Positions 8,833-61,500 of a DNA stretch of 64,000 nucleotides are shown here, one piece after another (positions within the stretch are counted from its first letter, which is position 1; every line of letters begins with the position of its first letter). The DNA is taken from assembly GCA_964234715.1 (NCBI GenBank), contig OZ174282.1, one strand, 5' to 3'. Origin of the DNA: Podarcis melisellensis. Taxonomy: Eukaryota. Under the pieces are notes generated by a model. The model ran no database searches. It was not told where the DNA came from and worked only from the letters and a program-made list of their open reading frames with translations. The position numbers and the translations under genes are program-made.

Positions 8833-9132
8833 TGGCAGCCTATATCCTGGTATTGTCCCATTGGAATCAGTAGGGTGGACCTACGGTTAGTCCTACTCTG
8901 AGAAGACACATAGAAATTAATGTGCATGACTAACTTATGCCCATTAATTTCAGTGAGAAATAAGATCACCTTGGCCTATCTCCCCACAAAAAGGAGATAA
9001 AGAAGCTACTATATATAGTGGGATATAGTCAATGTTTGTCCTCCAAAGTTAGACACACTGATGCTAAGGACAAACTTAGGTCCATTAATTTCAGTGGGTC
9101 CATTTTGAGATGATCTTAGCTGGATCTAGCCC
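8833..9132. mobile_element. Two adjacent copies of a short palindromic MITE (tagtcctactc.gagtagaccc...gaaattaat family)
   Basis: Core gaaattaat...gactaactta.g.ccattaatttcagtgg recurs at ~15634, 26030, 43763, 53240, 57920, 61200 and 61400. Confidence 0.6.
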
Positions 9133-10340
9133 ATTGCTTGTTTTGCTGTGGGGTTGATTTTTTTTTAAACATAGTTTGGGATCATGGACCAGAACTTTTT
9201 GAACCTTCTCTGTAAAATTCACAGTTCTAAGCTGGTTTTCATTATGACGTTGGCTTATCCCCTTAATGACATACTATGGCTTTGCATTACGTGCAGACCA
9301 GGCCCGCACAAAATAGTGATTCATTTAGAATTCTGGAGGAAGCCATGGTAGTTTCATAAATGAGTATAAACTTATACAGGTTTGTAGTGAAGATACTCCC
9401 TGCTGCTTCTCCTCCCCCACTTCAGTGAGAGCCAAGGTAGAAATTTTGGGAGAACTAGCTTGTGTGCTTACATTATCAGTTCCTTAAGCCTAGAGATAAA
9501 TATTTTGCTCTTTCAGCTGCTTTCTTTTCTTTTTAAAGTAAAGGGCGTTTCTCACACCACTGCAGAATCTTAGCAAGAGACATCAAAGCTTGTATGGCAG
9601 GAAAAGGAAGAAGGCTGGCTGGCTAAGCTTTTTTAGCATTGTGTCAGTCGCAACTGTCTATCGGAAACCACAAAAAAAGAAGCTGTGCCTTAATCTGTGT
9701 AGACCTGCAGTCACAACATGCCTTGTGCTTGTCCAAGAGGCCACTTCCTATCCAGCAGTATCCTTCTGTCCTCCCAAATGGCTACTTCCTCTTTTCAACT
9801 TCACTGGTGCAGTTCTGCTTCCGCCCCGAAGCATGTTGCTCCTCTGCTGTGCAGTCGGGACTTTCAAGCTTGGCAGCTCCTTTGCTTGCAGAAGTGAGTT
9901 CCTCTTAGGTCACGGCGTAAAGTGCATTTGCATGGGTTTGGCAAGGTGGAGGGAACGCCAATGCATCAAACCCAGTTGGCAAGAGGCCCTCTGGACGCTG
10001 TTTTAATTAGAAGCACCGTGAAAACTCCCTTTTGTGGTTTCACTTCTCAGGGCCAGAGTTGTGGGAAATGTTTTCTCCAGGTTCCAGCTGCCCTGGCTCT
10101 TTCAGGTGCATGTTCTGGCTCTTCAGATCCAGGTGAGCCTAGGTGGGGAAGGAACAAGCAAGATAGCTCAGCCTTCCAGGTGTACCTGCCTCTGCCTGTG
10201 TTCCAAAAGAGGGCAAGGTTGGGTAGGGAGCGTAGGTGCGGCCTAGATTTGGTACAAGAAGATATGTGTACTGAAATTCTCTGGCCTGTGGTTACAAAGC
10301 ACATACGCACACTTGCTAAGGAGTCAGGCAGACAAGGAAG

Positions 10341-13259: not shown

Positions 13260-13330
<71 letters not shown>

Positions 13331-13337
13331 TGTGTGT
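13260..13337. repeat. (CT)n(TG)n compound microsatellite
   Basis: Direct reading. Confidence 0.95.
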
Positions 13338-14956
13338 ATGGGGGACATGTTGACTGGAATTAAAAAGCAGAATGTGCTTTCAAACCATTCCCTGTGCAGA
13401 CTGTTAAGGAGTATAAATTAAGATCCAGAGGAGGGGGTATAGCTTATCCAGTGGAGTTGCCTATCGGTGTTCATGTGCAGAATTAGGTCCCATTTCACAT
13501 GAGTACAGATTGAAATGATACCAGTTTTTAGCCAGAGTCCAGTTGCTCACGACAGAGTCCCTGAGATAGCCTTTCAGCAGAGAACAAAGTGTTCATCCCT
13601 TGACGCATGTCCCAGAAACCTCAAAAAGAAAGAAAGGGGGTGGGGGACAAAATCCAGAATCCTTACTTGAGCACTACACTTTTCCATCTATTCCGCAGGG
13701 TGCTTCTATCACTCAAAACGTCCCTTCTGCCCATCAAATGCTCTCATCCTGCCCCGCCATTGTAAAACACCCCCAGAGTTCAAAAGGTCATAGCCTTTGC
13801 ATGCCCTCCCCTACCTGCTTTTATTACTTTCCGTTGCCTTCTCATGACTTGGCATTTCATTACCATAAGCAGCTCTTGCCGAGGTATCAGACAGGTCAGG
13901 GATGGGCACTGTGTGTTTTCTCTCTCTTTTACAACACTCTCTGGTGTCTTTCTCAAGATCCCTTTATTTCTTCAGCGGCTGGACAGAGAGTATAAATAAC
14001 TCCCGAACCTTTAACACGTTTGCTGGTTACTTAAGAGAGAGTGGCTTGTTTGCTTAAGTGCTTGACAACTAAGAAGATCCCCCCCCCCCCTTAAAAGAAA
14101 AGAAAGAGGGAGGTGCACATCTCCTGAAACCTATTGTTGTGGGATTTTAAAAGTCTCTTGTCTCTAATAAAACAAAGGGGAGTGAAGGAGGGCACCAAGG
14201 GAAGAAGGGATTTTGTCTCCTATCCAGCCAAAACCTTCCCAAAATGGGGTTCTTCACTATAATCTGCTTCTCTTTCAAATATAATAAGAACAGTACAGAA
14301 GCAACATTAAAGCAGATTTGATTTTAAAATGTAGGTCAAACTGCAGCAACTCAGTTTGGGTATGTGCATGTGTGTGCACATATTATTATTACGTATTTTT
14401 AAATCTGCATAAAGTTTAAGTATTGAAATGTATTTTTGGCCTGCTTCACATCATCAGTAGCCTGCTGGGTCCTAACAGAGCCGGCAAGTGCAGTGGGGAA
14501 GCTCTCAGCTTTGTTCAGAAGGGCAGTCACGATTAAAATGTTACCACAATGGTTATGAATTCTAAGAAAAACACATAGCCAGAATTTATTTTAAATGATC
14601 CATGGGGGTGCCCTGAAAGAGGTTATGGCACCATAATGACTGGTGCACTCTTTCTTTTGCTTAGGCTTTTGTGAATCAACTCCCACGTCGTCAGTGGGCT
14701 GTAGTACCTTGTGCTGCAACAAATTTGTTGTTTTTACAGGTGCTGCAAGAGCTCCCATTGTTATTGTCATTTCAAACTGAAATGACTGCACTTCTAGAAT
14801 TAAATGAGATTGAGATTTTATGCGTGTGTGAGAAAAAAGGAAAAGGGAGTCATGCCAGTTATGATTAAAAGTCAGGAGATTGACAAAAACAGAGAAAATG
14901 GCAGTATGATGCAAAACCATGTTTTTTTCTATACTATGTATTGAAACTATACTGTA

Positions 14957-15174
14957 CAGTGGTACCTCAGGTTACAGACGCTTCAGGTTACAGACTCTGC
15001 TAACCCAGAAATAGTACCTCAGGGTAAGAACTTTGCTGCAGGATGAGAACAGAAATCGCGCAGCAGCGGCAGCAGGAGGCCCCATTAGCTAAAGTGGTAC
15101 CTCAGGTTAAGAACAGTTTCAGGTTAAGAATAGACCTCCAGAACAAATTAAGTTCTTAACCAGAGGTACCACTG
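14957..15174 (-). mobile_element. Tc1/mariner (Tigger/pogo-like) MITE, copy 2, opposite orientation to copy 1
   Basis: TA|cagtggtacctc...gaggtaccactg|TA. Confidence 0.92.
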
Positions 15175-15633
15175 TACTTTGTATTTTTCGTATTTTATTA
15201 TTAGGCAGAGTTGGGGTTTCTTAATTGGTGGTTGTAAACTGCTTTGTGGAAAAAAATTCCTCAAAAAGCAGACCATGCAGTTTTTAGCAAATAAAATTTT
15301 TTGCTTATTCCAAACAAGTTTGACCAGTATATAAAATACATATTTATTTGTGTTTCATGATATGAGTTCTAGTCATGATCCAGAATTCATTGTTTGTGTG
15401 TTTGATGCGAGAGACTACTGAAAGGAAAAGTTTGAGCAGCCTTATGCTAATTCCCTAAACTGCTTTTTTAAATTCAAAGAGTTTATTTTTAAAAAACACA
15501 GTGTGTGTTTCAGGTGAACTGCTGAAAGGAAAATTCACAGAATAACTTTGGTGTGCAAGTAGATGCCATGCACACATGCGTATTGATCTTTGACTCCATT
15601 TAACTGAGTGCCAATAAGCAGGTAGGATTCTGT

Positions 15634-15765
15634 GGGTTGTGTCCAGTGTTACCCTTACTTAGAGTAGACCCACAAAAATTAATGGACCTAAGTAATGCCT
15701 GTTAATTTTAATGGATGGTTTTCAGTGGGTTTGCTCTGAGTAGAACTGATATTGTATATAGCCAC
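15634..15765. mobile_element. Short palindromic MITE
   Basis: gggttgtgtccagtgttacccttacttagagtagaccca ... tgggtttgctctgagtagaactgatattgtatatagcc inverted symmetry. Confidence 0.65.
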
Positions 15766-15810
15766 ATACCTATGGCATTTGTGCTGTTTTTGTTGTTAAA
15801 TCCTGGACAG

Positions 15811-15913
15811 TTTGCATAACTCAACATCTCTCTTTTCTTTTCTCTCCTCCTTTATCTCCATCTGGTCGTGGTGCCACCTGTCTCTTCCTGTGCTGAATGT
15901 TGTACAGGTAAGT
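15811..15913 (+). promoter_or_regulatory. Candidate recursive splice site (juxtaposed 3'ss/5'ss, CAG|GTAAGT at 15907/15908)
   Basis: No AG dinucleotide from 15811 to 15905, long polypyrimidine tract, branch-like cataac/ctcaac at its start, first AG followed directly by consensus donor GTAAGT. Confidence 0.55.
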
Positions 15914-16999
15914 AATGCCGTACTCCTTACTCAGTGTTTGCTGTGTTAATTTTGCTGTTACCTCTTTGATGAATGTGTCCCACTTTTTGACTTGGAATAA
16001 TGTATTTCAGCCTCTGAGTGACCTTTGGAGGATGTGCTTGAGCAGTTTTGCTAAGTGGTAGATGAGGATGGTGTGACATCTCAAGAGGGCCTAACTGGCA
16101 GCTTTGCCAGTACTGCTGCTTCCTTATGGATATGCGCTAAAAATCAAATGCTCACTAAGGCATCTGAATGCCACAGCAAAATAATATATTTTGCCCCTTG
16201 TTGTCACTTTGTTCTGGTTTCTTGTGAGCAAATCTTCAATATGCCTTGCTGCTTCTTTTTTAAATAGTAAAGGCAGTCAAGTATCTTTCAAATAGGCCAG
16301 TTGCATATTGTTCGAGTGCATGTGTGTTTGTAGTTGGGTTAGGTGCAGTTTGTTATGCAGTTTCCAAAACAATTCCCCCCCCCCACACACACACCTTTCC
16401 TCTGACCAAATATTTTTTTTAATGGTGTGGCACATTATAGCAGATATATACTCTTTGGCCGAAATATATATTGCTAGAGATAATTTAGTTTGGCCTCCCG
16501 TTCTAAATATTTGCACTGAGGCAACACCAGCATGACACCCTATTTTTGTGAAGCTGCCCCAAGATTATAACCAGCTGACCCTTGTGGGAAAACTTTCAGT
16601 GTTTGCAATGGTGTGAATGTTTAAAATACTGGTGGTAAGATTGTAATGATAGCACAAGCACCCTGCTATGCCTCTGACTGTGACTGTGACTGGCGAGACA
16701 GAATTGAGCATTTGGAGATCTATGAAACCAGGGTACACACTCAGCATACCTTACTGCTCCCTTTGCCCACTGAAAATGATAATTGAAATTTTACACCCAC
16801 CCACACATACAAAATTATTTATTGTAACCCACTCATGGTGCTTATGGTGTGACATACAAACGTAATAAGTAAATAGAATAAAATTGGGGAGGTGCACTAC
16901 ACATCATAAACATGATGGTTATGCAAAATACTGTACTCCGAAATCCATGTTAGGTGCCCATATACTCCTTTCCATAATACTGAATTACTTGTTCGGTCA

Positions 17000-17232
17000 G
17001 GAATGGGGAACCTGCAGCCCTACTAGTGCTGTTTCCCTTGTGTTGCATTTTAGGGGAGGGACATATCCATTTGTGCTCTGTGAAGCAGACGTGACGGGGA
17101 ACCTCTGGCCCTCTAGATATTGTTGAGGACTCCAAACTCCTATCAGCAGTATCCATCATTGTAAGTGGTCATGGATGATGGGTATTGTAGCTCAGAAACA
17201 ACTGGAGGAACACAGGCTCCCTGTTGCCTGTG
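17000..17232. mobile_element. Degenerate hAT-like MITE remnants (ccagatgttgttggact family)
   Basis: ggggaacctctggccctctagatattgttgaggactcc...gatgatgggtattgtagctcag...ctggagg. Confidence 0.5.
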
Positions 17233-19037: not shown

Positions 19038-21272
19038 AACTACAGTGTGCGATCTGACAAGTATGGGAAGAGGTGTTTAGGCTGGGTTATGGGGGCAGGT
19101 CAACCTCATCTTCCTTGGATGGGCATTCACTAACAGATTCCCTACCCCTCCACCCATATACATGCCTGTATTCTGAAAGGTTGTTCAGGGTTTTATTAGC
19201 AAAACCAAGGGCCAGGGTAAGAAGCTAGGTAAGAGAAATTGTAAGTGGTGCCTGCTGTTCCCAAGTTTACGATGCTCCCAAAGCAGTCACCTAAGATACC
19301 GCTTGTGGAAAAGATCCATTTACCTACTGTGGACCCCTTTATTTCTCTCTTAGTGACCACCCACTTTTTGTGGGGAAGGGCCATGCAATTGTAAATGTCA
19401 GAGAGAAGCTTGCATGAACTTACCACTCACTTATTTGTACCACCAACCCTCCAAAATGTGCCTGCCACATGCTTACAAGTTGCACCCCCTAAAACATAGT
19501 TATGCTCTGTTGTCATGGTAACCAGTTTTTTTAAAATGCTCATCTTACTTTGGTTGGTAATGCAGTTCTGCTAGGGATATCAGGCACAATTAAAATAAAA
19601 TAAAATAAAGGCGAGTGCTTGGTTTTATTCCTCGACCCATTCAAATGTTTGAATAGCTTATGAATGGTCTGAATATTATGAGGTGTTTGAAGTGCAGGTT
19701 TTGTGTGTGCACGTAATACACATGTTGGGAAGGTAAGTGTGCAAATTCTACTTCCCAATTTATGTATTTTGTAATGAAGAACCCACCACCACACCACCCA
19801 CCCTCACCCTCTTGAGCCACACTTCAGACACTAAGTTGTGCACGTGATTTTCTGCAAAGATAATCTCAGAGGAGAAGTGGGAGGAAGTAATGTTTAAAAT
19901 GGAGCCAAAGTTTCTTTTCTATTGCAAGTTATTTAATTTAGCACCACAGCCTGCGATCTTGCAGCTCCCTTCTGATATAACCCTTTTTCTTCAAGGTGTC
20001 CTGGACAGTGACAGTGATCAAGGAAAGCTGTTCTTTTATTTCCGCACTTGCATCAATATGATGCCAACTCAAATAAGGATAGGGGGTGCAAATTGTTAAG
20101 CTACTGCTGCATGGAAGGTGATGACTTCTCCTAGTGTTGCAGCACCATATGTTTGGATGACCCTAGTGCACACATGTTCCCATTGTCCAGGGCCCACTGG
20201 TAAATTGCAGATAGTGGGATTCTAATTTAGCAAAACATGCAAATCTTTGAAAACGTGGTGAGGTTTTTAGGACTAAATTACTGCACTGAGTGCCAAGACC
20301 TCAGCACCACAAAGGGTCTTACATATAACATAGTTATGGAACCTGATTTCTGCTCCACGTTGTCAAGTCCTCGGGGACAGAGATGACAATCTGTGTTGGA
20401 ACCTCTGATAGGTCAAGGGAGGAGTTTGCCATAGAGGAGAGTTCTGTGGACCACTGCTTAGCTTGAACGGACCATTCCAACTCCCTGTTCCAGTACTCAT
20501 GGAGGTAGGATATCTGTCTGTGAATCACCAATACAAGTAGGCACTGTGACAGAACAATTAACATGCCACTGAGAATCCCCCCTCAAGTAAAATAGAGCAA
20601 AACAGAGCCCTTTTAATTTTAACGCCCCAGTAATATTGTTAATCTCTTATGCAGCATGTTAAAAACCCCTGGAATCATCATCCTTTCCAAGAAGAAGACC
20701 CCAGAACGCCTCTCCCTCTGTGTGTGTATCCAATTAGCAAACTGAGCCTGGCACCCAGAATCTTCTTCATTGACAATAGAGCAAGCACAGCTATCGAAGA
20801 AGTTTTATCACCCACTAGTGTATGCAGACCCATAAAAAATTGCAGTCCCTGAAACAGGGGCCAAGGCACAGTAGGCTTGGTTGGAGGGATTCAAGGAGGG
20901 GGCAAGGGTCACAGGTCAGGACCTTTCTACAGGATGAACAGAAGCGGCTTTGACTCGTTAGTGAAATGACCGTAATGGATGATGGGCTTAAAAACAAGGT
21001 CTCTTGGGAGGGTAGAGAAGGCAAGAAACATAGAATCCCAAAGTGCCAGTATTTTAAGAAACACCCCCCCTTTTTTTCTTTCTTTTTCCATAAATAAAGC
21101 TGATGTTCCAAGATTCACATGTATATGTGGTGTTGTGGACAGACAGAGTGTAGGGTTTGTAGTGTTCATGATTAACCACAAATAATTATTTTTTCCGCTT
21201 AAAATGACCCCAAGGCAGCTTTATAGAAAAAAAATAGGCTCAAGTCACTCTGTCAACCCCAGAACAAATTGA

Positions 21273-22162: not shown

Positions 22163-22310
22163 NNNNNNNNNNNNNNNNNNNNNNNNNNNNNNNNNNNNNN
22201 NNNNNNNNNNNNNNNNNNNNNNNNNNNNNNNNNNNNNNNNNNNNNNNNNNNNNNNNNNNNNNNNNNNNNNNNNNNNNNNNNNNNNNNNNNNNNNNNNNNN
22301 NNNNNNNNNN
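22163..22310. other. Assembly gap (148 N)
   Basis: Run of N. Confidence 1.
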
Positions 22311-23045: not shown

Positions 23046-24434
23046 TTTTTTTTTAATATTTTTATTAGTTTTTTACACATATTAGTGACAATACAAAACA
23101 AACACAAACATCAAAAACAAACAACAAAAATTGACTTCCCCATGCCTTCCCTTCGCCACATCCTTGTTTTACCATTTTTCGAGCAACTCATCAATCAGTC
23201 TTTAGTTAAGTCCCTTTTGAATTTCCTTAAGATTTAAGATTTACAGCTGTAGTTCTTTGTTTCCTACCCCTTAACATCTTATCAGTCCACAATTTTACAA
23301 TAATTTTTTAGATATGTTTTAAATTTCCCCCAGTCCTCTTCCACTGTCTCTTTCCTCTGGTCGCGGATTCTGCCAGTCATCTCTGCCAGTCCCATATATT
23401 CCATCACCTTCGATTGCCATTCTTCCAGAGTAGGTAATTCTTGCATCTTCCAATACTTTGCCAACAGGATTCTTGCTGCCGTGGTTGCATACATAAAGAA
23501 TGTCTTATCCTTCTTTGATACCAATTGGCCGACCATGCCCAAGAGAAAAGCCTCCGGTTTCTTTACAAATGTCCACTTAAGGACTTTCTTAATTTCATTA
23601 TAGATCATTTCCCAGTAGGCCTTAATCTTTGGGCAGGTCCACCAAAGATGGTAAAAGGTACCTTCAGCCTCATTACATTTCCAACATTTATTATTGGGCA
23701 GATGGTAAATCTTTGCAAGTTTGACTGGGGTCATGTACCACCTATAGATCATTTTCATTATATTCTCTTTCAGGGCATTACATGCCGTAAATTTAACACC
23801 GGTGGTCCATAACTGTTCCCAGTCGTCAAACATAATGTCATGACCAATATCCTGTGCCCATTTAATCATAGCTGATTTCACTGTTTCATCCTGTGTATTC
23901 CATTTCAGCAGCAAATTATACATTTTAGATAAGTTTTTAGTATTGGATTCTAACAATTCTGTTTCTAACTTTGACCTCTCCTTCTGAAAACCAAGTTTCC
24001 TGTCCTGCTTAAACATCTCATTTATCTGACGGTAATGTAACCAGTCTCGAACTTTATGCTTTAGCTTCTCAAAACTTTGTAGCTTCAATCTTTCGCCATC
24101 ATATTCTAAAATTTCACAGTACTTAGGCCAATTAGAGTCCATGTTAATTTTTTTCACTGCTTTCGCTTCCATTGGTGACAACCACCTAGGGGTTTTACTT
24201 TCCAATAAATCCTTATATCTATTCCAAACATTATACAATGCTTTCCTGACAATATGGTTCTTAAAACTTTTATACACCTTTACCTTGTCATACCACAAAT
24301 ATGCATGCCAACCAAAACTATTGTCATATCCTTCCAGATCAAGAATGTCTGTATCTTCAAGAAGTAGCCATTGCTTCAACCAGCAAAAGGCTGCTGATTC
24401 ATAGTAAAGTCTTAAGTCTGGCAGGGCAAAGCCC
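23046..24434 (-). mobile_element. L1-clade LINE, 5' truncated and young
   Basis: ORF2 C-terminus, 3'UTR, AATAAA and poly(A) (poly-T on +); 17-bp TSD cctctgtttttgttttt at 23029-23045 and 24435-24451. Confidence 0.93.
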
Positions 24435-24439
24435 CCTCT
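23282..24439 (-). pseudogene. L1 ORF2p C-terminal fragment (385 uninterrupted codons; post-RT GGxxLP motif and Cys-rich CWKC...HLWWTC region)
   Basis: RGGFALPDLRLYY...CWKCNEAEGTFYHLWWTCPKIKAYW in the ORF track; endonuclease and RT core are absent. Confidence 0.88.
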
Positions 24440-24454
24440 GTTTTTGTTTTTGAA

Positions 24455-24858
24455 CCATCTAGTCCAGCATGGATCAGGCCAAAAGCCCATGTAATCCAGC
24501 ATTCTGCTGTCACAGTGGCCAATCAGATTCCCCAATAGAAGCCTTCAAACAGGACCTGAGTGTGACATCGCTCTCCCTAATTGTGACTCTTAGCAACTGG
24601 CTTTCAGAGGCATACTGCATACATACATACATACATACATACATACATACATACATACAGTGGAGGTAGCACACACAATCTTGGCTAGTAGCCATTGATA
24701 GCCTAATTCCCTGTAAAATTGCCTAAAAGCCATTCAAGTTGGTGGCCATCACTACATTTTCTCGTAGCAAATTCCATGCTTTAATGATGCAGTGTGTGGA
24801 AGTACTTCCTCTTTTCTACCCTGAGTCTCCCACCATTCAGTTTAGCTGGATTTCCCCC
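24455..24858 (-). mobile_element. CR1 LINE 3' fragment containing an (ATAC)n expansion
   Basis: ccatctagtccagcat...tcacagtggccaatcaga...agcaactgg...caagttggtggccatcactaca...ttccatgctttaat; matches the reverse of 4566-4928. Confidence 0.8.
24619..24659. repeat. (ATAC)n microsatellite
   Basis: Direct reading, about 10 units. Confidence 0.95.
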
Positions 24859-29993: not shown

Positions 29994-30734
29994 AACATAG
30001 GTTGATATTTCCTTTTTGTGGCGTAACACCTGAACACACTTCTGTCAGATGACTCAAATAGCTACGGGGAGGGAGTAAACGTCGGTGTTATTGACTGTTC
30101 ATCTCCTGCTTTCTTGCTGATTTTACAAACAAATTGGCTTCTTGTTACTGAATCCTGAAGTTAACCTTTAGCCAGTATATTAAAAGGACAGATTCACAGA
30201 AGCAGGTTGTTCCACCTGCTTTCTTTCACTACCCTTTATTGTGTAATCTGTGACTGTGCCAGATGCTTCTTCAGACGTATATTAGAAATGTGTAATGTGT
30301 AAGAAAGGGAAAATTGATTATGCAGAAGTGGCTTTAATTAAAACTTGTTTTTCACGTCTGCTCTCCTTTGTTTATGTCTGTGTGGCAAGGCAACGCCACT
30401 CCCTGTAGTGGGAACTTCTTGGAGAAGTTCAGCTGCTGGTGCAATCAAAGGTAATTTTGTTTGTGCAAGATATTTATCTCTGAAGCAATGGCGAAGAATA
30501 GGGGTTAAGGAGAGGACAGGAGGCAGAAAGCACAGTGCCTCCACCTGACTGTCAATCCTTATAACTTTTTAATGGCTTCCTAATGGAGTCCAATGCCATT
30601 CTGTCTTGAGGTTTCCTGAAGTACATTGGTTACTGCAGTTCTACAGTGACTTAAGGAATGAATGACAGCAAGCACTGATCCAAATAGTTGATGCATCAAT
30701 TTGAGCATTTACCATTTAGTAGCTGCCTAATTCC

Positions 30735-31108
30735 GGGACGCAGGTGGCGCTGTGGGTTAAAGCCTCAGCTCCTAGGACTTGCCGATCGAAAGGTCGGCGG
30801 TTCGAATCCCTGCGGCGGGGTGCGCTCCCGCTGCTCGGTCCCAGCGCCTGCCAACCTAGCAGTTCGAAAGCACCTCCGGGTGCAAGTAGATAAATAGGGA
30901 CCGCTTACCAGCGGGAAGGTAAATGGCGTTTCCGTGTGCGGCTCTGGCTCGCCAGAGCAGCGATGTCACGCTGGCCACGTGACCCGGAAGTGTCTCCGGA
31001 CAGCGCTGGCCCCTGGCCTCTTAAGTGAGATGGGCGCACAACCCCAGAGTCTGTCAAGACTGGCCTGTACGGGCAGGGGTACCTTTACCTTTACCTTTAC
31101 CTTTACCT
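30735..31108 (+). mobile_element. Sauria SINE, full length and young
   Basis: Intact head, ggttcgaatccc box, CpGs preserved, (ACCTTT)4+ tail, 14-bp TSD tagctgcctaattc (30720-30733 and 31109-31122). Confidence 0.96.
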
Positions 31109-31519
31109 TAGCTGCCTAATTCAGCATCCCCTCACTTGTTTCTGCATGTGTTTCAGTTGGGCATCAAAGCATATTCTACCCAAAGTGCAATTCTTCTGGG
31201 GGAGACTGGGACAATGTCCCAATTTGGGGATAGTGGTTTAGGTAATTAGAACTGTTCCCACATTACATTGGTAAAAGAAGTAACCCAACTCTATGAGTTA
31301 TTGAGTGGCGTTCATACATCTTGTTGTTGGAAGCTAATGAGATGCAATCTTGCAAGAATTTACCCTTGGCTACTAGGGGACTCTTGAGAGTGGCTAGGCT
31401 TTTGCAACACATGCCGAGTTGTTCAAGGCAACTGCTTATGATGGATTTAAAAATAATAATTGTAATTGATAGTGACAAAAATTAACTGTGTCCAGGATAG
31501 CCCCAGTGTGAGATGTTAG

Positions 31520-43762: not shown

Positions 43763-43873
43763 AGGGTTGTATCCAATTCTTGTCCTGTACAGAGCAGACC
43801 AATTGAAATTAATGGATGTGACTAACTTAGGTCAATGGGTCTAGTCTTGAGTAAAACTTAGTTAGATGCAACC
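43763..43873. mobile_element. Short palindromic MITE
   Basis: agggttgtatccaatt...agaccaattgaaattaatgg...caatgggtctag...agttagatgcaacct. Confidence 0.65.
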
Positions 43874-53216: not shown

Positions 53217-55349
53217 AGCAAGATTCTCTCATTGCAGATCTCATTCATGAATCCCAAGTTAGTCATGTCCATTAACTTCAGTGGGTCTGCACTGCGTAGG
53301 ACTAGCACTGGACACAGCACATGAAAATCAGGTGTGAGAATTGCCAGTGAAAAGGAAAGAGGTGTGGGTGGAGGAGACTGAGAGAGAAGCATTATGTCAC
53401 CAAGATTCTCTGCCAGCTGTGATGGAGCCGGACTATTGATGAATCCCTGGCTGTAGGCCAGTCTTTCCTGGACTCAAATGTAATTCAGGGAGAGGGCAGG
53501 GGAGGAGAAGGGCGGGAGGAGGGAGAGAGAACCAGACAGAGAAATTGATTGTTAGTTTAATGTGATTTGACATCAGGGAAAGTGGAAGTAGAGGACAAGG
53601 AAAAGCCACAACCTCAGTGCTACATTAGCAGCACTTTGACATTACAGAATTTATTGGTGCCCTGTTTCTCTCCTGGAGACAGACTTTTTAGAATCCTTTC
53701 CAGGGCAAGAGAAATATGGCCAAGGTTTGTGTATGAATGATAGCTTTGTGTGCAGGAGACACAGCTTGCAGGCACTCTCCCTGCCACCCCCCCCCCCCCC
53801 CCCCGTTGCTCAGCACCTACAGGGAAAGGATGGAGAGGGCAGAGCAGTCAAACAGCTGGAAGATGATATCCATTCTTTGTTAAGGCCATCAGTAATTTCT
53901 CTGGATGGGGAAAGATCACAGCTATGAGTTGTCAAAGTGATCCAGAAACGTCCCTGGCTGGTTATAGAATCCTGTCCTTGACAAGAAAGCTATCTATCAA
54001 ACTGTATCTGGGCAAGTTCAACCATTTGGCTAAGTAATGATGTGCAACAGAGCCCAATTGGACTCCTTAATGTAGGGTTGTTGGTAGGGTTGAATCCTGG
54101 CAGTGTGGGAAGGGGTACAGACCTTGCTCCTTAAATTGGGGTTGTCATATATTATGAAACCCCTCATACCTTAAAAAATGATGGCTCTTCCAATGCTGGG
54201 TGCTTGCAATTTGTTCGTTTGCATCATCATACATATTACTCCTAATTCCCTTTCATGTGTGGTGTTACCTTGTCGTAGGCTTGTTGAAGTTGTGTGAAGC
54301 ATCATATTTTGAAGTGAGCATTTTGGCTATTGTTTCACACATGAGGCCTCTCTTGCTTACGTAACAGCAAAATACCAACCAAATGTTAGGAATGTGTCCT
54401 AAGTATTTGTGCAGGTTGTTGCTGACCACTGTGTGTGTTTATTTATTTACAGCTTACTTCCCAACAAAACATTTTACTCAAAGCGATAATGTATATGATA
54501 ATGTGGTGACTGTGTTTTGGACCAAGTGCAATTTCCAGAACATATTTAAAGTCAGCCTTTAAAGATTGCATCAGGAGTCCAATCTGGGCATAACTGGAGC
54601 ATGTGTGACCTAGTCTGGGTCTACTAAGCACTGCAATATTTCTCGCTTTCCTTAGTATGTGGTTTGTTGGTTGCTTGCCATGCAAATAGGTATGGGAGGA
54701 GATTGCAGCTTATGTCACACACCAAGACACATTAGGTTCTCTAAAGAGTCTATTTCTTTTCCTCTCTCTTGTTGGTGGTGGTTTAGGAGAAGTATGCAGA
54801 CAGGCTTAGAGGTATGTAAGGGCATTATTGTGGAAGGTAAGAGAAAATGTCCCGTCTGAAGTAACCACGAGACGAGAGCTCTGGGCCTGTGCTTTATACG
54901 GGGCAAGAAATCCTGTATTGTTTGCTAATTCTCTCCCAGACTGGAAAATACTTCACGTCTGTCCTCGCGGAAAACATGTCATGAAAGAGTGTTTGTACGA
55001 GAGGCATCTTTGTTCATTGTTCCCCTCAGCCAGTGTAACTTGACATATTCTGCATTAAAGGCGGAGGTACCTTGAAAACAGCATTTTGTTTTGCTTTTTA
55101 AAGCATGAAAGAAAGGAAGAAAGGAAAGGAAAAAACAGCTCACAGTCATGGAACTGGAAAGCCACCCCAAGGACCAGGTCCTGAGCAGCGCTATGAAGCT
55201 AGAGCCAGATGTGAAGACAGGTCTCGAGGACTTTAACAGGACAGCATTGACCACTGTGTTATTTCCCCCCTTGCCTCCATGCCACACTTCAGCCTTCATA
55301 ACTTCCACCCTTTTTTTGTATCAGCTTCACACCATCATCCTTTGTGGAA

Positions 55350-56458: not shown

Positions 56459-56872
56459 TGGAAAAGGGGTGTGGCTAGGTCTTAGAGCACATACTTTGTG
56501 TGCAGAAGACCCTAGGTTCAGTCCCCAGCATCTCCAGGTAGGGCTGGGAGAGAAACCTGTCTGAAATCCTAGAGAGCTGCTGCTAGTCAGTGTAGACAAT
56601 ACTGAGGTTGGTGGATTTGGGATAAAGCTGCTTCCTATACAGTGGTACCTCGGGTTACATACGCTTCAGGTTACAGACTCCGCTAACCCAGAAATAGTAC
56701 CTCGGGTTAAGAACTTTGCTTCAGGATGAGAACAGAAATTGTGCTCCAGCGGTGTAGCAGCAGTGGGAGGCCCCATTAGCTAAAGTGGTGCTTCAGGTTA
56801 AGAACAGTTTCAGGTTAAGAACGGACCAACGGAACGAATTAAGTACTTAACCCGAGGTACCACTGTGTTCCC
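56459..56872 (+). mobile_element. tRNA-derived SINE with CR1-like tail, interrupted at its tail by MITE copy 5
   Basis: ggttcagtccccagcatctccaggtagggctggg...gtagacaatactgag...gcttcctata[MITE]tgttcc. Confidence 0.8.
56640..56865 (-). mobile_element. Tc1/mariner (Tigger/pogo-like) MITE, copy 5
   Basis: TA|cagtggtacctcgggtta...taacccgaggtaccactg|TG; the right TSD deviates. Confidence 0.92.
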
Positions 56873-57919: not shown

Positions 57920-57992
57920 AGGGACCCAAGTTAGTCATGTCCATTAATTTCAGTGGGTCTACTCTGATTGGATTAGCAGTGGCTACAACCCT
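57920..57992. mobile_element. Half copy of the short palindromic MITE
   Basis: cccaagttagtcatgtccattaatttcagtgggtctactctga...ggctacaaccc, nearly identical to ~53253-53300. Confidence 0.6.
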
Positions 57993-61199: not shown

Positions 61200-61500
61200 C
61201 CAATCGGTTCATCAAGTGCTAGTCCTACTCAGAGTAGACCCATTTAACTTATTGGCCATGAGTATATCACTATTATACTTAATTGGGTTGTATCTATCTC
61301 TCTGTCTTAACAACAACAACAAAAGCAACAACAACCCTGTCCCGAGTCACCCAGTGAGCTAGGAAACTGAAGGCCTTAAAGTATGAGTTATATGCAAGGC
61401 TACTCCTACTCACAGTAGACCCAGAGAAGGTAATGAAGACAACAAAGTTAAGTTCATCAGCTGTGCAGTTTGTCTACCCTTGAGTATAACCAATAGGATT
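61200..61500. mobile_element. Two degenerate copies of the short palindromic MITE
   Basis: gctagtcctactcagagtagacccatt and ctactcctactcacagtagacccag...tctacccttgagtataac. Confidence 0.5.

Follow-up and report, generated by a model that had tools for sequence, protein, structure and literature searches.

Vertebrate recursive splice (RS) sites and cryptic RS-exons are known from neural genes (CADM1/2, LSAMP, NTM, OPCML, PDE4D, ANK3, ROBO2, NCAM1 and HS6ST3), in whose long first introns an acceptor AG is placed directly beside a donor GTAAGT. These sites lie on the sense strand of long introns (>5 kb, typically >50 kb, first or second) in long genes, and the donor of the RS-exon is usually found <350 nt downstream, the RS-exon often containing a premature stop codon. 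Zhang et al. listed four features of RS sites, namely a long intron, an AGGT motif, a strong 3' splice site and high conservation, and they also reported branch motifs at 20-50 nt upstream of real RS sites, which is an enrichment and not an absolute requirement. The published filter for the strength of the 3' splice site is MaxEnt >=5, and the criteria originating with Sibley et al. (2015) are used here as the papers that cite them present them. The tests that define an RS site are RNA evidence (junction reads from the upstream exon to the first base past the AG, a saw-tooth profile, or lariats) and conservation of the AGGT across species at a level similar to that of canonical splice sites. 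A study of mouse brain described that real RS sites are enriched in AGGTAAGT and in T + C over the 20 nt preceding AGGT, and in the literature it is the pyrimidine content of these 20 nt that best distinguishes real AGGT sites from false ones. In the table of validated sites of that study (n=20), T+C is >=0.75 in 17/20, including 15/15 of those carrying AGGTAAGT, and G in the same 20 nt is <=0.20 throughout.

The candidate analyzed here, TACAG/GTAAGT at 15903-15913 on the + strand, lies in a 64-kb stretch of lizard DNA (the whole stretch analyzed, called the window), and its features are collected in Table 1. As RS sites require, its acceptor AG is fused to the GT of a donor, which rebuilds a strong 5' splice site, and it has the same form as the 15/20 validated mouse sites that carry the full AGGTAAGT octamer. 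The setting of vertebrate RS sites is intronic and exon-free, and that of the candidate is exon-free and probably intronic. The likeness becomes weaker upstream of the AG. In validated RS sites the pyrimidine tract stands directly against the AG, with T+C mostly at 0.75-1.0, whereas in the candidate ~42 nt lie between the end of the tract and the AG, and the 20 nt before AGGT reach 60%. Moreover, the branch motifs that are enriched at 20-50 nt in the former have no counterpart in the latter.

Other known systems share part of this architecture. The ratchet points of Drosophila (Ubx, kuz and ~200 others) have in common with the candidate the fused 3'ss/5'ss look of a zero-length exon; unlike it, they carry a long uninterrupted polypyrimidine tract beside the AG, and most of them have a second 5'ss <100 nt downstream, while the nearest usable donor of the candidate is weak and lies at >=150 nt. 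Tropomyosin-type 3' splice sites combine distant branch points with long AG-exclusion zones, and their AG opens a real, conserved and regulated exon. The candidate follows the same order (branch-like motif, pyrimidine tract, AG-free spacer, first AG), likewise with a CU-rich tract of the PTB type; however, its AG directly abuts a donor and no exon body follows, as it does in the tropomyosin type. Finally, the candidate resembles strong intronic pseudo-5' splice sites and U1 snRNP sites (telescripting, decoy sites, cryptic exons) in that its 9-mer is perfectly complementary to U1 and probably lies on the sense strand, but this class is defined by binding or functional assays and the candidate by its sequence.

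Table 1. Features of the candidate site and its surroundings, in window coordinates; a slash marks a splice boundary and scores are those of simple matrices (PWMs).
Feature	Position	Strand	Basis or score
AG bounding the AG-free zone on the 5' side, also acceptor of the alternative 97-nt exon	15809-15810	+	direct reading; PWM 2.6 bits
AG-exclusion zone, 95 nt	15811-15905	+	rank 11 among + strand AG-free runs
Branch-point-like cataac/ctcaac	15815-15826	+	only ATAAC fits UnAy (A at 15819)
CT-rich low-complexity tract with abundant UCUU/CUCUCU-type motifs	15826-15864	+	36/40 pyrimidine at best
20 nt preceding AGGT: T 40%, C 20%, G 25%, A 15%	15886-15905	+	composition count
TACAG, acceptor-like end	15903-15907	+	acceptor PWM 5.4 bits
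GTAAGT, perfect donor	15908-15913	+	donor PWM 12.6/12.7 bits; preceding CAG gives the full U1-complementary 9-mer
Best donor <200 nt downstream, atg/GTGTGA	16071-16076	+	PWM 5.6 bits, weak
Inverted pair of decayed dispersed-repeat copies	15625-15780	.	similarity ends near 15765-15780

A sequence-only reading had described this locus as an AG-exclusion zone of 95 nt with branch-like cataac and ctcaac at its 5' end, a long pyrimidine tract, TGC motifs near the acceptor, and TACAG followed immediately by GTAAGT. Direct reading of 15500-16300 bore out the zone together with its bounding AG, and the remaining letters proved correct as well: both hexamers are present (15815-15820 and 15821-15826), the CT-rich tract covers ~15826-15864 with its best 40-nt window at 36/40 pyrimidine, TGC occurs at 15869-71 and 15891-93, and no nucleotide separates TACAG from GTAAGT. 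The same reading had called the sequence apparently non-repetitive; 15780-16000 is single-copy in the window, while the adjoining 15625-15780 consists of a pair of inverted, decayed repeat copies. This AG-free run ranks 11th in length among ~4,500 on the + strand, such a length being reached by 0.24% of runs, and the best 40-nt window of the tract belongs to the top 0.2% of positions in the window. There is a single CAGGTAAGT 9-mer in the 64 kb. RNA folding of 15805-15925 predicted a hairpin that pairs 15884-15893 with CAG/GUAAG, which is not significant (z = -1.1). An internal duplication, suggested by the repeated AAGTAATGCC...TGTTAATTTT, was rejected, as neither the repeat search nor BLAST gave an extended repeat.

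The two halves of the site are of very different quality. Splice sites were scored with simple, approximate PWMs, so that the values given here serve as rank guides only. On this scale the donor at 15908, with 12.6 of a possible 12.7 bits, stands at the 99.97th percentile of all GTs in the window, while the acceptor at 15907 reaches the 92nd percentile of AGs (5.4 bits) and 367 AGs on the + strand are equal or better. Over 15886-15905, the 20 nt before AGGT, T+C is 0.60 (T 0.40, C 0.20), with G at 0.25 and A at 0.15; among the 273 AGGT sites on the + strand of the window, 23% have T+C >=0.60 and only 2.9% reach >=0.75. The candidate appears to fall short on the proximal-pyrimidine feature and the comparison leans negative, although its 0.60 equals the lowest of the 20 validated mouse sites; it is below all 15 that carry AGGTAAGT, and its G of 0.25 compares with a maximum of 0.20 among the 20. 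Three validated mouse sites have proximal tracts as poor as this one. The strong pyrimidine tract is displaced, lying 43-82 nt upstream with its end ~42 nt from the AG. We also searched for a UnAy branch motif 20-50 nt upstream of the AG, the interval of its enrichment in real RS sites, and found none there. The UnAy matches in the zone have their A at 15854 (53 nt from the AG) and at 15819 (88 nt) only, and the former, TTTAT, is the sole full yUnAy match in the AG-free zone. Since no other AG intervenes between a pyrimidine tract of the top 0.2% and this AG, it may still be a workable 3' splice site, as in a scanning model with a distal branch point.

Downstream of 15908 all donors are weak: gtg/GTAGAT at +150, atg/GTGTGA at +163 and ctt/GTGAGC at +316 (16224), and the PWM found no strong donor within 150 nt. 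The one at 16071-16076 would bound an RS-exon of 163 nt with stops in all frames. As a usable donor is likewise missing downstream of 10/20 validated mouse sites, this weakness speaks neither for nor against recursive splicing.

The window is repeat-rich, with 43% G+C and a CpG observed/expected ratio of 0.22. When 136 stop-to-stop ORFs of >=74 aa were scanned against Pfam, those touching 15000-17000 being set aside, no coding exon above chance appeared in the 64 kb, as would be expected for a very long intron; exons shorter than this threshold would escape the scan. The single match, to RHD_RETREG1-3 (E = 0.0094), considered as an exon of the host gene, was rejected because it is at chance level among 136 queries. 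An open frame of 417-420 aa at 23285-24544 (-) has no Pfam match at E <= 0.01 and carries a Cys/His motif. This motif resembles the C-terminal part of L1 ORF2, and the frame lies on the strand opposite to that of the probable transcription. Also, 148 N are found at 22163-22310, being an assembly gap or a masked stretch.

In relation to the strand, T exceeds A on the + strand in 16/16 4-kb blocks (S_TA +4.2%) and G exceeds C overall (S_GC +2.1%), a skew of the sign that sense strands of vertebrate introns are reported to show. The motif therefore probably lies on the strand that is transcribed. AATAAA/ATTAAA signals number 89 (+) vs 108 (-) and 5'ss-like motifs 9 (+) vs 5 (-), small counts whose difference is partly explained by the T>A skew. 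Taken together, the window probably belongs to an intron whose sense strand is the + strand, the one with the motif, a skew linked to replication being a possible alternative.

Repeats reach the very edge of the candidate. The site itself has no second copy within the window and begins right beside repeat-derived DNA, an inverted pair of a dispersed family that is ~65 nt long, with copies 65-85% alike. Further copies of this family are found at 53256-53322, 57927-57991, 61212-61283, 61370-61495, 43764-43825 and 8863-9109. The remnants that adjoin the AG-free zone argue against a deeply conserved block immediately upstream. A second element in the region, a small MITE-like inverted repeat, occupies 14944-15187, with terminal arms of 31 nt (...CAGTGGTACCTCAGGTTA... 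and its complement) and internal TCAGGTTAAGAAC repeats. At 13260-13337, (CT)27 and (TG)12 form a perfect compound microsatellite, in this order, which illustrates that CT-rich tracts can arise locally as simple repeats. The search for CpG islands met a GC-rich block at 27.4-29.3 kb and a CpG cluster at 30600-31200, the only strong one in the window. The latter was rejected as a promoter, since it corresponds to a young SINE (30734-31108) with a CpG observed/expected ratio of 0.84-0.89, which mimics a CpG island in the scan. This SINE ends in ~5 ACCTTT units, (ACCTTT)n, and is flanked by a target duplication of 14 nt that starts with T (tagctgcctaattc, at 30720-30733 and 31109-31122), which fits the features published for the Sauria SINE of squamates and marks this DNA as that of a squamate; no tRNA was found within it by ARAGORN.

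How often such a motif would appear by chance was estimated from the empirical share of AG-free runs of >=95 nt (0.24%) multiplied by the compositional probability of GTAAGT (3.1e-4). This gives ~0.0035 expected sites, each an AG-free zone of >=95 nt ending in AG/GTAAGT, per strand per window. Over 702 windows of the genome and 2 strands, ~4.9 sites are expected at >=95 nt, ~15 at >=70 nt and ~50 at >=50 nt. The candidate is therefore beyond chance within one window but not at the scale of a genome scan. The published yields are also low. In mouse, 20 RS sites supported by both junction reads and a saw-tooth profile came out of 4.77 million AGGT sites in sense orientation, and <0.06% of the long introns that are expressed use RS. 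The human figures are 36,870 sites passing the filters of motif, 3'ss strength and conservation, of which 342 had junction reads and 16 a saw-tooth profile, and high-efficiency intronic RS sites number ~10 in human vs 197 in Drosophila. The yield from motif to validated RS site is thus about 1% or less, conservation filter included.

Recursive-like sites are found elsewhere in the window too. The best combined PWM score, above that of the candidate, belongs to 10131-10138 (...ctcttcagatccAG/GTGAGC), which has an AG 4 nt upstream, and a second AGGTAAGT at 19731-19738 has a poor tract. In another repeat family, the copies at 56538 (+), 32211 (-) and 59865 (-) have a good acceptor directly joined to a donor (...catctccag/GTAGGGC). 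By combined PWM score these three rank near the top of all recursive-like sites in the window, so repeats can seed motifs of this kind in bulk. By eye, we also noticed a splice-like pair near the candidate, a pseudo-exon of 108 nt at 15514-15621 (tttcag/GTGAAC ... AAGCAG/gtaggat) with all three frames closed.

In our opinion, the candidate is probably a chance pseudo-site in a lizard intron and not a dedicated or selected recursive splice site; this ranks as the most likely explanation, the end of an unannotated exon would come next, and a true recursive site last. According to the exon reading, GTAAGT at 15908 would be the donor of a real exon, which we regard as unlikely. Such an exon could be a cassette or poison exon (15811-15907), could reach back to 15663 with a length of 245 nt, or could be a first exon, alternative or of a lncRNA, with ATG TTG TAC AG at its end. 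The perfect donor is in its favor, and cryptic exons in long introns were reported by the mouse study, but the acceptors available are poor, the one at 15811 with 2.6 bits (80th percentile of all window AGs) and the one at 15663 mediocre (88th percentile). One frame of the 97-nt piece is open, although it encodes a low-complexity run of L, S and F, and an open frame is expected anyway because pyrimidine tracts cannot contain stop codons; besides, 97 is not a multiple of 3. For a first exon, a TATA-like TATATAG at 15755 lies ~150 nt upstream of the donor. On the other side, the Kozak context of the ATG is poor, with T at both -3 and +4, no CpG island is present (3 CpGs in 15300-15900, observed/expected 0.15) and the would-be promoter is partly decayed repeat.

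A genuine recursive site appears improbable on the same evidence. It would imply that an upstream exon is spliced to 15908 through a branch near 15819 or 15854 and the tract at 15826-15864, and that the regenerated 5' splice site, xAG/GTAAGT, then removes the remainder of a very long intron, the RS-exon being optional. The perfect AG/GTAAGT is the form enriched among validated sites, and the long AG-free zone is accompanied by a pyrimidine tract that is strong though distal. The skew agrees with transcription of the + strand, no exon appeared in the 64 kb among ORFs of >=74 aa scanned with Pfam, and a good downstream donor is also missing from half of the validated mouse sites. These points have to be set against a proximal stretch of 60% pyrimidine and 25% G, poorer than in all 15 validated AGGTAAGT sites, the absence of a branch motif at 20-50 nt, a prior from motif to validated site of ~1% or less even after conservation filtering, and the several motifs of this kind expected by chance over 702 windows. 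In its more specific form, that of a working RS site of a squamate intron with an unusual build (branch point and tract 43-90 nt upstream, an AG-free spacer and a perfect regenerated donor), we consider the proposal very improbable. The indirect features are mixed overall and lean against a true recursive site.

A chance pseudo-site may have arisen where a perfect U1-complementary 9-mer, CAG/GTAAGT, happens to hold the first AG after a decayed CT-rich tract of low complexity. Its surroundings are CpG-poor and exon-free squamate DNA, unique within the window, and probably belong to the interior of an intron with the + strand as its sense strand. In a transcript, the site would presumably be bound by U1 snRNP as any strong pseudo-5' splice site, and it might occasionally act as the donor or the acceptor of a rare cryptic exon. 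PTB, which binds motifs of the UCUU/CUCUCU type, would tend to be drawn to the CU-rich tract and to keep the site silent. The candidate probably has no function of its own.

For now, the value of this candidate is one of caution: a AGGTAAGT placed behind a long AG-free, CT-rich stretch is striking in a single window, yet it is expected several times over hundreds of windows. High-confidence recursive sites number about 10-20 per mammalian genome. Should the candidate prove real, it would join a small and well-described class, with an atypical build in which the tract is distal, and it would extend the known architecture of vertebrate RS sites, where the tract is tight against the AG, and add an example from a reptile.
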